The notes under the pieces: model-generated
What the model saw: the letters and a program-made list of their open reading frames with translations, nothing else
Database searches by the model: none
Told to the model about the DNA's origin: nothing
Shown here: positions 11,015-24,039 of the stretch, in pieces
How the letters are laid out: each line of letters opens with the position of its first letter
How positions within the stretch are numbered: the stretch's first letter is position 1
Assembly: GCA_964057225.1 (NCBI GenBank)
Contig: OZ059897.1
Coordinates: forward strand, 11,656,001 to 11,720,000
Length of the DNA stretch: 64,000 nucleotides
Direction: 5' to 3'
Source of the DNA: Auanema rhodensis
Taxonomy: Eukaryota; Animalia; Nematoda
Translations under genes and position numbers: made by a program

Positions 11015-12491
11015 AAAACTTAAAGTTATAAATGAGATATAAGAATTATTAAAAATATATTATACATCTATTCATATATATCATATTCAAGATTTATATA
11101 TCATATAGTAAAGAATGTTGTTATATACATTAGTATACCAAGTAAGTATGCAGTAAATACATATTTATGATGTAAAATCAAGATTCAACATATAAAAATT
11201 TTAATATTTCTTCCGTAAAGATGTTTTCTTTCTATTTTTTATTATTAAATTGTATATGTATATTCTATATAAATATCTAACTAACTATATATAAGTTTGT
11301 ATATTTCATATTCATTATAGTATAAGATCTAATAGATTTGTATTACATATAACTAAAATATAAAGATTATTGTATATATTTATTATATTTTTATCATTTT
11401 ATCATATTATTTCTTCTTTTCTTTTCTTTTAAAGATTAAATATATTTCAAATTGATTTCTTTAAATGAATGATCTTCGATCATATAAAATTTTTCTCTTT
11501 TTTTCTCTTTAAAGAACTTAGATGTACAATGTACGGAAAATGAATGTATGGATGAATGATTCTGACATATACATGTATGTAAAACTTATAATTTTCCTTT
11601 AATATTAAAGAATCAAAAATGAATTATATGTATATCTATTTTAAGTAATATTATATAAAATAAATAAAAAAATATTTTTTCTTTTATTAAAAAATTTATA
11701 AAATTTATTATATATTTATTAATTTATATTATTATTATTATTATTATATTTAATAAATAAATTTATATAATATGTTGTGAATCTTAATTGATAATCATCA
11801 TATACATCAATATAAACTAATACTATATGTAGGATGTATGTAGATTGTATTATTGAAATTACAAAGACATAAGCTTAAGCTTATTTTTCTTCCTTTTTTT
11901 TGTGAAATTAAAAAGAAAAAAAGAATCATTTTGAATGTTAATTGAAATAATGAAATCAAATAAACTTAGTTTTTGATTGTAAATAAACAAAAAATTGAAT
12001 ATTCAGTATTAAAGATGATGAATATGCACATATCTTCAATAGAAAATGACTATTTAATAGCAAAAAATGTAGAAAATTTATTTGAAAAGAAAAAAATTGT
12101 TACAAATAATAATTTTTCATATTCAATTAAATTATTTATTTGAATATAGTTATTCTTATTTATATAAAAAGTTATTTATAATAAGATGATTCGTTAATAT
12201 TGCAAAAAAAAAGATTTTCAATTTTTGCTCTCTTAAAAGCCAAATCTATTCATATTTAAATTTCAGCTGTATTTATTTTGTATTGAATATTAAAAATTTT
12301 CTTCAAAATTGAAAAGAATTCAAATTGTGTTTATTGAAGATTCTTTAGCTCTTTTTGAATGAGTTAAAGGATAGCTTTAGAAACGAAATAACTATGACAA
12401 GCGTTTTTCTTACTTTTTTTTATTATAAATAGAAATATTGTTAATACAACTGCATGTTCATGATGTCAATAAACCTTGTTTAACTGTGTAC

Positions 12492-12526
12492 CTCTCTCTT
12501 TCTTTCTCTCTTTCTCTCTCTCTCTC

Positions 12527-12580
<54 letters not shown>
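12492..12580. repeat. (CT)n microsatellite
   Basis: Directly visible. Similar CT/GA tracts at about 1617-1706, 15876-15946, 40542-40617 and 43748-43823. Confidence 0.9.
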
Positions 12581-12971
12581 AGTCACTACTATTCTCATAA
12601 AGTTTCTATGCTTCTATCTGTATTAAGTATAAGATTCTAATATACATCTTTCCAAGTCATTTTATTTTTTTTCTCATGATATCTGCACAAATATTTTTGA
12701 GCTTTATGTCCGAAATAGTGGGCTTTTCCAACAAAATTTTCACATAAAATTCTTTCCATCAGCCAAGACATTCTTCAGAATATATAAGTTAATAAATATA
12801 CGAACATTTGAATTCAATTGTTAAATTGAAATTTTTTCATTCTTAAATTCTTCTTCAAGCAAATGTTTCATTATAGTATATTCCACGACATAAGTAACTA
12901 TTTTGAATTTTAATTTGTATATGTTTTAACTTTTTTTGTTTTTGTAAAGTTACAGCTGTTAACTTGTTTTC

Positions 12972-13015
<44 letters not shown>

Positions 13016-14382: not shown

Positions 14383-14978
14383 ATGGCATTCAACTCTACA
14401 GTTATTCTTTCTATTTTTCTAATTCTTGTTATTTCCTCTACATATGAAGCAAGAGTTGTAAAGGTTGGTATATGTATAAATATGTTTATATTGTTTTATA
14501 TTTTCAAAATAAAATGTACTTTTACATATAAAAATTTATTTTTATAATAGGTTTTAATTCCTCATTCTATTTGCAGCAAGTTCAATTATCTCGAGATATG
14601 CCATCATGGAGATCTTCTGTTCGTGTTCGCCAAGTAAGCATTTTCCTTTTTTTTTTTAATCAAAAATATATAATTTTGAATTGATTAATGATATATATAT
14701 ATATATATATGAAAGATATTCATCATATATTACTATTATAGTTATTTCTTTTATGTTTTAAATGATGAATATCAATTCAAAAACAACAAAGATTTCATTG
14801 TTAATAGGGGAACAGAGATTTTTCAACTTTGCTAATTAAGTAGTTTCAGATTCAGGGAAACTTCCCTCGACTCTCATCATTTCATGAAGGTGGATCTCGA
14901 CCACAACTATTTGGAAAATGGTTCAAGAGACAACCAGAAGAAGACAACTTTGATGATTCTGCCATTGAATCATATTAA
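14383..14978 (+). CDS. 88-aa secreted peptide, candidate neuropeptide precursor (3 exons)
   Basis: Exons 14383-14463, 14577-14633 and 14850-14978 (all phase 0, GT-AG) give MAFNSTVILSIFLILVISSTYEARVVKQVQLSRDMPSWRSSVRVRQIQGNFPRLSSFHEGGSRPQLFGKWFKRQPEEDNFDDSAIESY. Signal peptide, KR site, acidic tail. TTTCAG 17 nt before the ATG; AATAAA at 15182. Confidence 0.75.
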
Positions 14979-15625
14979 TCACATGAATAGATTTAACTTT
15001 TACACTAATTTTCCATAAATTATGTAAAAGTTTTTTCTTTTTCAAATCGAATCTTTGTATTTAAAACATTGAAAAAAAATTTTTTTTTCTTATGTCATAT
15101 GAAGCTAACATTCATTTGAATTGTTTAACCATATTCTTTATATTTAATTTGAAAATGATAATGGGCCCAGCAAAACACAACAATAAACATTTTGTTTCTC
15201 TCTTAATCTGTTTATTTGTCGAGATGAGAGACGATAAATTGTTTCAAGAAATTGAAGTCGATGTGTAAAAACAACCACTGAATTGAATATTAATGTGAAA
15301 AGATTATTCCCTGACACTGATACCGAATGTCTTCTTCCAATTACATATCTAGTTGGTTCGTAATTGCCTTAGTTATAGCACTATGTGATGCGAAGCAAAT
15401 GTTAACCTTCTTCCGAAAGAGACAAATGCTCAATGTCAAGAAGCTAAGTATTGAACTAATTAGTTTGCCAGAATCCATATTGACACTCGGTTATATTTTC
15501 GTTTAGGATAAGCATTTGCTTTATATTTCTAACAAAAATATTTATTTCGCATACATGTCAAATTTGTCTTTCATATGATATACCATATTTCATTTTTGCT
15601 TGTTACTAAGAATAGTTTCAGTCTA

Positions 15626-15875
15626 ATGCTTACGAACGATCTACCCTATGCTCATAAGGTTGCATTAAACACGAACTTAATTCGTATGAATATTAATAGC
15701 AACTTTTCTCATATCAACAGGTACATGAAATATCAAAATGTAGAAAACAATTGACATTTCTTTGTTTTTTTATTTCCAGATATCATATCTCTATTCTTCA
15801 AATTCGTCGAAATGGAGAAGAATTGAATGCAAATGATGAATATAAGGATGAGTTAGTTGTCCTTTTATTTCGATA

Positions 15876-15950
<75 letters not shown>

Positions 15951-18900
15951 CTCGGTCGCTCTAATACTTATTCAACAAATCCCAATGAAATTATAATCAT
16001 TTTAGTTATTCAAATCATATAAGACAACAAGCATTATATCATTTAATGCAATATGTGACTCAAACGCGAATAGAATTATTCGGAAGCAATTGGAGAGAAA
16101 ATATCTATGATTATGATTCAACACTTTATTCAGTTGGATGTAAAATAACTGAAGAACAAGGGTCCGTACCAATCATCTTGACAGAGGTTTCCGGTTACAA
16201 TAAGTGAGATAATTTTCCCCCTCAAATCTTTTAAGGAAATAAGTCGCATGAAGGATTCGTTTAAGAAATATTTCCGGTTTGCTATTAAAATTATACTTAA
16301 AATAACTTATATTGGAAAGGTATGATATTATTATGTATAAAATATTATAATAATAATAATTTTGGATTGATATTCCTAAAAATATGGAGAATATGAATGA
16401 AGAAAACAAACATCAGTTAATTGAATTTTATATTTGTGTTATAAATCAATATTTTCTTATTAGAAAGTAAGTTTATTTATTTATTATCTTCAAGACAATA
16501 ATATTTTCAGTGATTATATTTGTTTCTCAAATAATTATTTTGAAAAAGATGAACTCGATGAAAAAATGGTTTTCAATGCTTTACCCAAAATGCCGACAAA
16601 TCGTGTAAATGCGAGAAAAGAAAAGTTTTTTCCTGATGATCCAAGAATCAATCTGTATAACAACAATGATTTCCCTAATGATGAAATAGAGAAACTACCT
16701 TATCAAGCTTTTAATAATAATTTGATGGAACAACAATTCAATCACATTAATCAATATGAAGAAATATGTGAAACTTATAATATTCCTACCTATTATTGCT
16801 ATAATAATGGATTTAATACAACGTTCACAGCAAGTGATGTAGCATCTGAAGGAAGTTCTCGAGCATCAGATGATACTAGAACACCCGGAGATGATAAAGT
16901 TTTTAATAGGAAAGGCATTGAATTGAAAAATGGTTTTGAATGTAATTGCAAGTAAGTTCAATAAATAAATAAATTATATTATTGATTTTATATTATTTTT
17001 AATAGATTTCTTCGAACTGGAAGTCAGTTGAGTTTCTTTCTTGAAATTCACCAAAAGATAAATGCATTTTACAAAGAGCAATCTTTATTACATTTTATGC
17101 AACAATTCTTTAATCTTGATGACAATATCAAAGATTATCTTCAAAACGCAGAAATCATACAGAAAAAGATTAAAGGTAATAATAATTATTTCTTATATAA
17201 CATATAAATTAATTTACGTATTAGATAACACTCAAAATAAATTTTGAATAGAATATTTGAATAAATTTTTAAAACAAAAGATTCTATTTGAAATTACAAA
17301 TAAATATTTTGAAGCAAATTTCAAATATCATCGAAATCAAAGATGATTTTTGAATCTCGTCATACAAACGAAATAATAGGGAAGCTTTTTGTTTCTTAAA
17401 AAAAAGAAACATAACAAACAATTTTAATGAATTGTTTCTTATTTAAAAATTTTTTGACTTTTTTTCAGATATTGCTACAATAAATCTTGGTTGTCGAGAC
17501 ATCTGCTTTCCAGAAATAGAAACAGGATATTCATCTTCACAGTATATTTTTAATTACAAAGGAAAAACAACAACAATTAAAGAATATTATGAAAGTCGTT
17601 ACAACTTGCAAGGATGGTAAAGAATTTTATATTGAAAATTATAAAATTTATAATATATTTACATATTTAGTGACTTACTATGTAAAGAAAAAACAAATTA
17701 TTCTTGTCTGATTCCTGCAAATTTGCTATTAATTCCTGCAGGTCAACGTCTTAGAGCTGATGTACTGAGTAGTGCAATGGTAGCTATTGTGATATGAAAT
17801 TAAAACAAAAATTTATTTATTCTACTTTAGAATCGGAAAATACAATTATATAAATTGCATCCATTTGTATATAGGAGTAATATCATAAGTTTCATGGAAA
17901 ATTCTGGAATAGTACAAGCAGACAATGAACTTTTGAATGTTTTTGGGGTTATAGAGTTTAATAATTTATTGTTTTATATGCATATTCTTTTAGATTAATA
18001 TGGAACCAACGCTATATTCAGTCCAAGCAGAAGTACTGTATGCACCAGCCATTTGTTATGGAAACACGTAAACTTCTTTTTATATTTGAGCATTCACAAC
18101 AATAGCTATAGGGTAGAAGAGCCTGGAAATACTGGCTTCGTGGATGAAGCACTGACTCATAGACCACAGCAGTACTTCCGTCCTTCTATACTAAACGCTG
18201 ATATAGCTGTTATAATCTTAGATAACGCAATATCATCTTATGAAGCCAAGTAATTACCTTTTTCAAAAGTAATTAAGATCAATAGAAATATTTTATTTAG
18301 ATTATGCTTCGAAAAACTTATGAAATTATGCTCTGAATATGGACTTCGTCATTCAGGAAAAGTTATGTATTTCGAAGAATCGAGTAAAGATTGTTCAAAA
18401 ATTGAATCTTATATTAATAAGTAAAATATAAATCAAAATATAGTTAAATAATGAATAATGAAATTCAGGACATTTGTACAGTGTCAAAACACAGGATTTT
18501 TTGTTTTTATTGGAAGACGAAAGAATGATGCTTTTCGAGGTTGACTAGTTTCAATTTTAAAAAAATTATATATTTCAGATACTGTATTATTGTATGAAAA
18601 TACAGTACCAACATTATATATTGTTGGACAAACTTTATTTCAATGTGAAGAGAATAATACTGTAAAATTTATTTTTTATTGCAAAATACTTAATATATTC
18701 AGCATTCTATAAACCTAGCTATGAGAATAAATTTAAAATTAGGAGGAATCAACTGTAGTATTATGCCTCCTGAAATTTTAAAAATTCCTGACAGGTTTTA
18801 ATTATTTTTATTTCGTTTTATTATTCTGAAAATTTGCAGACACAATTATTTTAATAACAAAATGTTTATTGGTTTAAACATGTATAAACCAAATATCACA

Positions 18901-19961
18901 TGTAATGAAGAAATACAGAAAATTCCATCAGTAATAGGAGTAAGTCAATTAATTTCAATATAGTTAGTAAAACTTAATAAAAGCATAGATGGCATTTACA
19001 AATAAATTCCCAGCTCAATTAGAAGGATCATATTGGTATCAAGAATCTTCATATAACATCATTGTGTGAGTTTTTACATTTTTTTTAAATTTAATTTATT
19101 TTTTGTATTAGAAGACTAAGAGAAGTTACTATGCAAGCATTATATCAATATACTCAACATATGAATGAACTTCCAACAGAAATTATTCTTTACCGATGTG
19201 GATATTCACCGGAAGATGTGAATGAAATCAATGAAGAGATAGAACAAATTGATGAAGCTTGTAGCTTACTAGCTGAAACTCTTGGTATGAATAAGCCGAA
19301 GATTATTTACATACTTCTTAAAGAAAATCAAAATATGTGGTAAAATATGATCATAATTTCAGTTTTGCAATTTTTAATATTTTAGGTTATTTCAAGAGAG
19401 TCCTCACTATCATAAAGTATCACCAGGAACAGTTTTATTCAATGATCTCTTGGATAGTAAATATAAAGATTTCATATTGAAATCTACAAATACATTATCA
19501 GTTAAATATAATATTAATATTAATATTTGATATAATTTTTAGGGAATTAATTCAATGCCATATAGATATACTATATTAAGAGATGATTATAATACTAATA
19601 TAAGAACAATAGCTTATATAACGTATTGGCTTTGTTTTACTGATCAGGTAAATAGCAACATCACAGTTTTCTTCATTTCTCTTTGTTTAAAGGGAACAGC
19701 AATATGCTCTAAACAGCCATATGTTTTGCAACAGGCTCACGATTTATCAGTCAGAGGAAATACTATATGGAAGTCTCATATGTAAATTATTGTCAAAATA
19801 TACTTACTATGTATTTTTTTTTAATATTCAGAAATTATCAGGAAGATGCAACAAAAATGGGATATACAAATGATATCAATTATACAAACGAATATGATGA
19901 AAGCTTCTTTGAAAGAAAGTCAGTAGATTTTGGACCCAGTATTAATGGACATTTTTGGTAA
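15626..19961 (+). CDS. Divergent worm-specific Argonaute (WAGO-type); 5' end uncertain, possible extra exons from 15224
   Basis: N domain KVALNTNLIRM..RYHISI and IYDYDSTLYS; L1 GIELKNGF and INAFYK; PAZ TIKEYYESRY..IPANLLLIPAGQR; L2 FGINMEP..AEVLYAPAICYG; PIWI MRINLKLGGIN, MFIGLNM, LPTEIILYRCG, VSPGTV, YRYTILRD, TYWLCF, AHDLSVRG; ends GHFW*. Confidence 0.85.
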
Positions 19962-20315
19962 ATGTTATGTTAAGTGTTATGTTTGAAAAGAAATCTATTT
20001 ACTTTTGTTTGTTAATAAACATTTTTACTGCAATCTTAAAGACCATTTTTTAAAATTATTAATTTCAAAAATTGGGAAAAAAAAGTAATAATGAATAATT
20101 TAATATTATAATAAACCTGGACACGATTAGACAAACTAATTGCCTGTTCTCTGATAATTAATCACCATCTGGTTATTTAGTAATCTTTTATTGTAGATAT
20201 CTCGTAGATAAATCTCAATAAACATTACCAAAGCGTATAAAATAAAATTCATAACAAGTAAAAAATAACAATTTTCAACGAAAACAACAAACAAAGATAT
20301 AACTTATCATTTAAA

Positions 20316-21273
20316 TCATTTCTTTTTTGAAGAATCTTTCTTTTTTCTGTTGAAGTTTTTCTTACCACTAGTACCGCGAACCTTTTTCGCTTCTCTCGCT
20401 TTGATATCATTAAATCTGAAAAAACACATAGGTAAGTAGAGAAAATTGATATCATCATTCTTACGCTTTTCTCTTTTTCTGCTGAAAGTCCATATCTGCT
20501 AATAATTCATCAACCATATTGTTTTTCCTCTCAGCTTTAGTCATTCGTCCACTATAATAGTCTTCTGGTGCATCCACAACTCTACCAACCTGCATATTAT
20601 GAAATGAGTATTGCTCTGTTAAGTGTACAAACTTGGAAATATTTCGGTAGCTTATCAGTATCATTTTTTCTATAAAAGGCTAATGGATCAAGAGCTCTTC
20701 TCATCTGCAGAAGTTCAAGATCCATGCGCGCTTCTTCTGTCAACTCTGTTGCTGGCATGTCAAACCATTTCTTTCCTGCTGTTTTCTCCAATTCAATCTG
20801 AATTAAAATAACTTATTATAAACGGCGCATTGAAACCAAAAACCTTATTTTGTCTTTTAATCGCCCTTCGACCTGATGGCTTCTCACAAGGATTTTTTTC
20901 TAATCCAGGATGACACACTGCTTTTGATAATAACTGAAAACAAATATACATTTAAGGTTCTCCTATACACTTCACAGACCTTTTCTAATTTTTTATCTCT
21001 TGGTTGTTCTATTGTTACTATAGGTTTCTCAACTTCATCTTTTTCTTCTGGTCTATCCTCACCAGCGGTATCGAAAACAAAAAAAGAGTCTACATCCTAA
21101 AATGAATAATTAAATATTTTCATTTCATTAAAAAATTAGCTTACCACTTTACTGGATCCCTGTTTAGCTCTGAAAGAGCTTGGCACAGGTATTGTTTTTT
21201 TTGAACTTTCTTCATTGTCTGATTCTTCTACATCTGATTCCACTACTTTGAACAACTTTTTAACCTTAAGCAT
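20316..21273 (-). CDS. fcf2: Fcf2/DNTTIP2 pre-rRNA processing protein
   Basis: EKTAGKKWFDMPATELTEEARMDLELLQMRRALDPLAFYRKND..LPKYFQVGRVVDAPEDYYSGRMTKAERKNNMVDELLAD is the Fcf2 domain. TTTCAG acceptor 6 nt before the ATG; basic C-terminal tail. Confidence 0.92.
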
Positions 21274-22068: not shown

Positions 22069-24039
22069 ATGTCTGCTGTCGAATCTGCTTCCACCGAAAC
22101 TCCAGTGGTTGAAACTCCAGCGGTTGAAACTCCAGTGGTTGAAACCCCTGCAACAGAAACTCCAGTTGTGGAAACCCCTGCAACTGAAACTCCAGTTGTG
22201 GAAACCACAGCATCAGAAACTCCAGTTGTTGAAGCCGTTGCAACCGAAGCTCCCGCTGCTGAAACTGCTGTAGAGACAACTAAGACTACCGATGCTCCAG
22301 AAGTCGCTGTTGAATCTACTACTGAAACCACCGCTGAATCTGTTGCAACTCCAGTTGCATCTACTGATGCCACAAAGACAGAGGAAGAGACCAACACACC
22401 CGTAACAGAAGACTGTGCAGTCGCTGAGGAGACAGAGATTGTTTTAACCAAGGAAGAGTAAGTCTTATTTTTATAAGCGAACGTCATTTTCATTTTTGCA
22501 GAAAAATTACTAAAGCCAAGGAAATCTTCGTAGAAGGCAAGAAACATTATCTTGCTGGAAGTTATGATCTCGCTTCTGAAAAACTTAGCGAAGCCCTTAA
22601 GTTTGGGTATGTAATACATTAAAAAAATAATTTTTATTCTTGTCATTTTAGTGTTGAAGTATTCGGAGAATTCGGTGTCGAGAATTTCCATAACTATTAT
22701 TACTATGGAAAGTCGCTTCTCGAGGTTGGCAGAGCCGAGGACGACGTTTTGAAGACTGCTTTGAAAGATATGCCTCTCACCGAAGAAAATGCTAATGATT
22801 CAATTGATGAGGAGCAGTATGGAAATCCCGAGACTCTCTCAGGTATATTGATGAATATTTTGTTTTTTTATTCTTACAATAGCTGAAGAACGCGAGGAGA
22901 TCAAAGATCAAGTAGACGAAGCTTTGGCTGAGAACGCCAGAGATCTCGAGGTTTGACTATCGGTTTTTTTCGGTATATTTATAAAAATGTTGTTCTAAGA
23001 CTGGAAAGCCTGAAAATGCTGAGGGAACCGTAGATGCACCTGCAACTGAAACTGAAGCTACCACTGAAGTAACCACCGAGGTCACGGCTGAAACTACCAC
23101 AGAGACAGCTGAAAAGACCGCCACTGACGAAGAGCAGAAGGTCGAGGAGGCTGTTACTGAGACTAAAGAAGATGCTGAGATGGAAACTGAGGAAGGTGAA
23201 ACAGCTCCTACTGCTGAGGATGATAACATGGAGGAAGGTAGCGCTGAGGAGGACGATGAAAGTGAAGACCAACCTTCATCCATTCAGGCCGCTTGGGAAA
23301 TTCTTGAGGTGAGGTAGTTTTTTTGAGCGTTTATTTATCTATGCTATTAGGTCGCTCGCAAAATCTGTGATGCTCAGGAACCTACCAAGGACTGGGAGTT
23401 GAGCAAAGCTGATGTCTTGTTGTCTCTTGGAGAATGCTCTGTTGAAGATGAGAACTATACCCAAGCTGTTGATGATATCACTGTTGCCTTGGAGCTTTAC
23501 AAGAAGTACTTGGACACCTCTGATAGAACTATTGCCCGCACCTATGTCATTATGGCTAGAGCTTATAAGCTTAACGATGACTTCCTTGGAGCCAGCGAAC
23601 ATTACATCAAGGCTAAAGAGAGTCTCAGTTCCAGAATTGGTATATTAAGATTAATTTTTTGTCATTTGTCTATATTCATTTAGCTGCTCTTGACACCACT
23701 GAAGCTACCGAGGAGGTAAAGGCATCCAATGAGAAGGAGGTTGCCGAGTTGAAGGAGCTTGTTGCTGACATCGATCTTAAGATCGAGGATGCTAAAGAAA
23801 GTGCTCAACAGAGCGATGAGGTAATCAAGGAAATCTTGTTCATACTATGTTTACAATTTCAGAACATCGCGAGAATCAAGGAGCAGCTCGGACTTAACAC
23901 TGCCAGCGCCTTGTCAGAGAAGACTGATGCCCCAGCTGTTGATATTACTAATATGGTACGCAAAGGAGTTAAGAGAACTGCCGATAGCGCTCAAACTGAT
24001 GAATCCAAACGTCTTAAGGAAATTAACGCTGCTGAATAA
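22069..24039 (+). CDS. nasp: NASP histone H3/H4 chaperone (SHNi-TPR family)
   Basis: [22 protein letters not shown]; [10 protein letters not shown]; acidic insert; AWEILEVARKI; [23 protein letters not shown]; [15 protein letters not shown]; C-terminal [12 protein letters not shown]. Confidence 0.92.
22096..22230 (+). repeat. Coding 15-nt tandem repeat ([10 protein letters not shown] x9) in the NASP N-terminus
   Basis: GAAACTCCAGTGGTT-like units are directly visible. Confidence 0.85.

Follow-up and report, generated by a model that had tools for sequence, protein, structure and literature searches.

What becomes of an Argonaute when catalytic residues and part of the pocket that holds the 5' end of its guide are replaced? 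This question is raised by an Argonaute gene in a 64,000-nucleotide (nt) stretch of the genome of the nematode Auanema rhodensis (assembly GCA_964057225.1, contig OZ059897.1, positions 11,656,001 to 11,720,000 of the forward strand), which we call the window and by whose own positions all features are located below. Slicer-dead, fast-evolving Argonautes are common among nematodes, and programmed DNA elimination has been reported for the genus Auanema. A sequence-only reading of the window had described the region from 18490 to 19961 as an Argonaute apparently without slicer residues and without a 5'-guide pocket that could be a scaffold, bind unusual guides, or be decaying. The locus is best explained as a structurally intact gene of an Auanema-type rhabditid nematode with four-domain architecture and a PAZ domain recognisable from weak matches. 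We favour the reading, at somewhat less than an even chance, that its product is a lineage-specific and non-slicing Argonaute resembling the worm-specific Argonautes (WAGOs), which would still bind RNA although its hold on the 5' end would be weaker or altered.

The region from 18490 to 19961 covers the MID-PIWI end and is only the 3' portion of a larger gene. Following splice signals and reading phases by script, we obtained a model of 21 exons at 15626-19961 on the + strand (as are all features of this gene), which join into a coding sequence (CDS) of 2772 nt or 923 amino acids (aa). All 20 introns are of the GT-AG type and span 39-307 nt, mostly 40-55 nt. The candidate start codon, ATG at 15626, is located 4 nt downstream of a TTTCAG acceptor that could be a trans-splice site, with a second in-frame ATG at 15575 as an alternative start, and the TAA stop codon at 19959-19961 is followed 53 nt further on by AATAAA at 20014. 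The coding exons had been described as open, and this proved true of the whole gene: the CDS holds no stop across 923 codons, whereas shuffled versions contain 77 in-frame stops on average and never fewer than 54. The two remaining frames of the real CDS contain 58 and 113 stops, and the GC content of the window is 29%. Since the shuffles and the other frames are full of stops, the open frame is not a product of chance, and a non-coding region or chance open reading frame (ORF) can be ruled out. A (CT)n run of ca. 35 units lies within intron 2 (15880-15950).

The predicted product is an Argonaute. Database searches were made with single exons, the joined 923-aa model being used in local scripts. 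Exon 17 (75 aa) alone matches the Pfam Piwi family (PF02171) with 35.3 bits at a cut-off of 28.9, i.e., the Piwi domain (RNase H-like) of the Argonaute/PIWI superfamily is present above the cut-off. Weak Piwi matches of exons 14 and 19 are collinear with it (profile positions 49-66, 129-199, and 245-274 for exons 14, 17, and 19). HMMER aligned exon 17 to residues 630-698 of Drosophila Piwi, and its neighbours in the ESM Atlas are Piwi-domain clusters with Nematoda as the most frequent group. The PAZ domain and L2 are encoded by exons 5-9 (aa 270-475; 17006..18067), where a 48-aa piece from exon 6 weakly matches PAZ (PF02170) with an E value of 0.023 and a score of 15.1 bits that misses the cut-off of 28.8. 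It also aligns with an Argonaute chain of the PDB in the PAZ region of the latter (VbAgo 235-264; ...EYYE.RY...). The MID domain with the 5'-end pocket region follows from the gene model and alignment as exons 10-14 (aa 476-642; 18112..18794). PDB sequence searches with exons 3, 12, 13, 15, and 20 and with a read-through of exons 19-20 gave nothing useful.

The N domain and L1 are encoded by exons 1-4 (aa 1-269; 15626..16951), and here a weak match of exon 3 (16007-16201) to PF25128 (HRDE1_NRDE3_N; E 0.059, profile 71-113 of 158) is the sole hint as to clade. It points to the WAGO branch, to which the protein most likely belongs. Exon 4 (16511-16951) is unusually long with 146 aa and contains a low-complexity stretch, rich in Asn, Gln, and Glu, that separates the N domain from L1. 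This exon has no family match in Pfam and no relatives in a word-index search, and it makes the N-L1 part ca. 60-80 residues longer than in typical Argonautes.

Instead of the catalytic tetrad DEDH or DEDD, the protein reads N-E?-C-H. The first position (D597 of human AGO2, hAGO2) is Asn (N656 in KMFIGLNMYK; 18877..18879), which closes a hydrophobic strand, as is expected of the first catalytic Asp; it is placed by this motif and by the collinear mapping of exons 14, 17, and 19 on the Pfam Piwi profile, the PDB search with its 33-aa exon having been blank. The second catalytic Asp (hAGO2 D669) is Cys (C731 in LYRCGYS; 19197..19199), aligned by HMMER with the Asp of FYRDGVS in Drosophila Piwi. 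The fourth position is kept as H867 (19738-19740), which together with R872 (19738..19755 for both) is placed by the motif QQAHDLSVRG and by spacing, PDB searches of that exon being blank. A candidate glutamate finger (hAGO2 E637) is E695 in YQESSY (19043..19045), which is placed by its spacing of 36 residues upstream of C731, compared to 32 in hAGO2. With two of its four tetrad residues exchanged, the protein cannot act as a slicer. The sequence-only reading had thus been right to see an Argonaute devoid of slicer residues, and the Asn of GLNM, the Cys of YRCG, and the His of AHDL all fall on the codons where it had put them.

The 5'-end pocket is a more delicate matter because its reading depends on the alignment register. 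In AGO2 numbering, this pocket includes Y529, K533, and Q545. The only tool-derived anchor for the register is a HMMER alignment of NLAMRINLKLGG to residues 562-573 (AGO2 numbering) of human AGO1/2/3, in which the alignment of the strand with the K..K pair reaches residue 580. It equates R620 and K624 in MRINLKLGG (18724..18738) with hAGO2 K566 and K570, i.e., the latter Lys is retained, the former is conservatively replaced by Arg, and both positions are still basic. Counting back from this anchor without gaps and using the published hAGO2 numbering, Y529 (the position of the WAGO His), K533, and Q545 become F583 (18533..18535), V587 (18584..18586), and I599, with Q602 at the position of Q548. 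The other register worth considering is shifted by +7 and reads Y590, V594, and Q606 (I599 to Q606 span 18620..18643); among all shifts from -10 to +10, it alone restores more than one canonical residue, but it requires two compensating 7-residue indels versus none in the gap-free register. The gap-free register finds some support in the FFVFIG strand and the next Lys, which coincide in position with LVVVIL-PGK of AGO2, consistent with the known AGO2 residue numbers.

Whichever register is chosen, none supplies the first-pair Lys. A motif scan found no [HY]xxxK anywhere in MID residues 476-640, and the loss of this Lys therefore holds in every register, while the losses of the aromatic residue and of Gln are register-dependent. 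The pocket reads F-V-I-K or Y-V-Q-K, which is neither the YKQK of the AGO clade nor the HKQK of WAGOs. Outside the MID domain, R872 lies five residues after H867 with the same spacing as H807 and R812 in hAGO2. The motif KENQNMW (aa 772-778; 19317..19386), located by the Piwi alignment, ends in W778, whose codon is split by intron 17 and which replaces the conserved Arg (R714-type) of the N/H-T-R-F/L-F motif in Piwi/AGO proteins (here KENQNMW-LF); the alignment to ...TRSMN of Piwi stops one residue short of it. In the gene model, the protein ends with ...GHFW before the TAA (19947..19961).

These results change the picture of the pocket in part. KENQNMW and the terminal GHFW do occur where the earlier reader had placed them. 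However, the four pocket positions cannot be R, L, L, and R as then written: the proposed exchange of Lys for Arg is that of K566 for R620, and a loss of the fourth pocket Lys is rejected by the HMMER alignment of K570 with K624, but the Lys of the first pair is indeed missing. To say that the 5'-guide pocket is lacking was likewise an overstatement, for R620, K624, and R872 preserve the basic half of the predicted pocket, and either F583 or Y590 offers an aromatic ring for stacking. What stands of that claim is that the first-pair Lys and the R714-type Arg are gone, with the Gln doubtful.

Compared with hAGO2 and the AGO clade (YKQK, DEDH), the protein shares the K566/K570 strand (562-580), the YRDG-type strand, the AH....R motif, and, by a weak match, EYY..RY of the PAZ domain. 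It differs from hAGO2 by Asn for D597, Cys for D669, Val for K533, Trp for R714, and Trp for the terminal Ala, as well as by Phe for Y529 and Ile for Q545 (Tyr and Gln, respectively, if shifted). With WAGOs such as HRDE-1, NRDE-3, WAGO-1, or WAGO-3, it shares the nematode origin, the predicted N-PAZ-MID-PIWI order, the absence of a DEDH tetrad, and the weak match to the HRDE1/NRDE-3 N domain. The K..K strand (xRINLKLGG) is basic as in Caenorhabditis elegans WAGO-3, where the corresponding pair K658/K662 was mutated to block RNA binding (bioRxiv 10.64898/2025.12.19.695459). Unlike the HKQK of WAGOs, however, the Auanema protein has F..V or Y..V with a register-dependent Gln, and the channel Arg is Trp. 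Primary nematode Argonautes, in turn, keep YKQK (2026 review, PMC12908457).

If the favoured reading is correct, the Argonaute would still load a small RNA whose 5' nucleotide would stack on F583 or Y590 with fewer phosphate contacts, and it would act without cleavage through the recruitment of partners, as most WAGOs do. The weaker and more hydrophobic pocket could reduce the affinity for the guide or shift the preferred 5' chemistry, and the guide channel would be lined by Trp (W778) in place of Arg. The Argonaute of the bacterium Marinitoga piezophila (MpAgo) and two relatives prefer 5'-hydroxylated guides, which they bind in a non-canonical MID pocket (PMC5435312). MpAgo may thus serve as a precedent for a non-canonical MID pocket that comes with altered 5' chemistry rather than with loss of the guide. 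However, it is an active nuclease of bacterial origin and unrelated in sequence, and the likeness is therefore an analogy of mechanism, not one of family.

The composition of the gene suggests that its frame was still being maintained when the residues changed. The GC contents of first, second, and third codon positions (GC1, GC2, and GC3) are 0.40, 0.31, and 0.21, compared to an intron GC of 0.20, and the same periodicity is found separately in the N-L1, PAZ-L2, MID, and PIWI blocks. GC1 and GC2 are still well removed from the neutral composition at which third positions have arrived, which is evidence against long-standing decay. The gene shows neither the frame breaks and lost splice sites of a pseudogene nor neutral composition at all codon positions. 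Decay had been one of the options raised for this locus; a frame that is open over 21 exons and a coding periodicity in every domain make decay of long standing unlikely.

Several observations nevertheless weigh against a functional RNA-binding protein. HKQK is reported for all WAGOs of nematode clades III-V, and exchanging its HK for AA abolishes small-RNA binding (PMC12908457); by this precedent, loading could fail for want of the Lys and, in one register, also of His/Tyr. No relatives came to light: phmmer with exon 17 against 1.84 billion representatives gave no match at E ≤ 0.001, a threshold that requires ca. 54 bits for a 75-aa query and excludes only relatives above ca. 40-45% identity in this exon. 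Exons 17 and 4 drew equally blank results in word-index searches, whose length filter excludes full-length Argonautes, and a metagenome scan with exon 17 found none. A tblastn search of the model against the window did not reveal any paralogue there. These blanks suggest, but do not prove, fast divergence or lineage restriction. The GC3 of 0.21 equals that of introns and is below that of the neighbouring Fcf2 gene (0.31-0.36), which fits very low expression. In addition, C. elegans wago-5 and wago-11 resemble genes yet are treated as pseudogenes (PMC10101689).

Most of these points feed the strongest rival explanation, which we consider unlikely though far from negligible: a silent or dying gene, i.e., a recently inactivated or unexpressed duplicate under relaxed constraint whose frame has not yet been broken. 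It would account for the simultaneous change of two catalytic Asp residues, the pocket Lys, the R714-type Arg, and the C-terminus, for a GC3 at intron level, and for the failure of the searches to detect a close relative. The protein is also rich in Asn, Ile, and Tyr, i.e., residues of AT codons (FYMINK 0.38 vs. GARP 0.16). wago-5 and wago-11 would be the precedent as Argonaute-like sequences of gene-like appearance without detectable protein expression (PMC10101689), but the Auanema gene differs by a frame and splice sites that are all intact over 21 exons. Random frames in a genome of 29% GC run into a stop about every 12 codons, and 923 open codons with 40 intact splice signals speak against inactivation. 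The same is true of GC1 and GC2, which differ widely from the intron composition in each of the four domain blocks, so that constraint, if lost at all, must have been lost recently relative to the depth of the residue changes. Moreover, MID and PIWI keep their hydrophobic strand motifs (FFVFIG, KMFIGL, IILYR, and IIYILL).

At the other extreme, the protein might be an ordinary WAGO that binds 22G-RNAs, with neighbouring residues substituting for those of the pocket (R584 beside F583, or Y590 with Q606), such that the apparent loss would be an artefact of divergence from human AGO2. The retention of K624, R620, and R872, the recognisable PAZ, and the weak match to the HRDE-1/NRDE-3 N-domain family all fit this explanation, as does the +7 register by bringing back Tyr and Gln at the canonical spacing of 16 residues. 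However, the two indels of that register have to be paid for, the MID domain still offers no Lys in any register, and HKQK is reported as invariant in WAGOs, with a change of HK to AA abolishing loading (PMC12908457). We regard an ordinary WAGO as rather improbable.

There are two further possibilities. A functional eukaryotic Argonaute without the first-pair Lys, which in one register would also have hydrophobic residues in place of the remainder of the H/Y-K half of the pocket, might either work guide-free or use guides whose 5' end lacks a phosphate or is unusual in some other way; we judge this quite improbable. About as improbable is a guide-less scaffold of Argonaute fold that has ceased to load small RNA and acts as a decoy or as a module for protein interactions. 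The joint loss of slicer residues, pocket Lys (and possibly Gln), and channel Arg (W778) together with the altered C-terminus would agree with it, and HK-to-AA and KK-to-AA mutants of C. elegans WAGOs indeed fail to load RNA. However, a guide-free protein would have no reason to keep half of its phosphate-binding residues and the PAZ signature, and no guide-free full-length eukaryotic Argonaute was found in the literature searched.

The surroundings of the gene were inspected as well. Downstream and convergent with it lies an Fcf2 pre-rRNA-processing gene (20316-21273, - strand) with two exons that match PF08698 (78 and 44 bits) and a last coding exon ca. 350 bp from the Argonaute stop codon. 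A metagenome scan with an Fcf2 exon recovered five loci, none of which has an Argonaute beside Fcf2; this includes three loci (L001-L003) with Fcf2 exons that are ca. 60% identical. Upstream, a small gene of three exons (14383-14978, + strand) ends ca. 650 bp before the Argonaute start. Its product begins like a signal peptide (MAFNSTVILSIFLILVISS...), contains ...GKWFKR... at the C-terminus, and may represent a secreted peptide or a precursor resembling those of neuropeptides. An ORF of 130 aa (22069-22461, + strand) encodes acidic repeats with only weak, low-complexity Pfam matches and overlaps a 214-aa ORF on the - strand; a look-up of its exact product found no recorded gene with an identical product in the collection searched. 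Further long (CT)n and (ATT)n microsatellites are located at 12490-12590 and 12965-13015. A bipartite promoter motif of the form ACGTG-(35-65 nt)-CGGTTG has no match on either strand of the whole window, and neither half-site was found between 14000 and 16100.

A 2026 review (PMC12908457) counts among the open questions why WAGOs carry HKQK and whether this motif sets their specificity for 5' triphosphates. If the gene is silent or unconstrained, it would be one more decaying member of a nematode Argonaute family with fast turnover. If it is maintained naturally, an Argonaute that lacks the Lys, and perhaps also His/Tyr and Gln, would provide a ready test of how far these pocket residues are needed. 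And should it be functional without the Lys, the rule that all WAGOs are HKQK would have a natural exception, which, if it selected guides with an unusual 5' end, would also be a eukaryotic counterpart of the 5'-hydroxyl binding seen in MpAgo.

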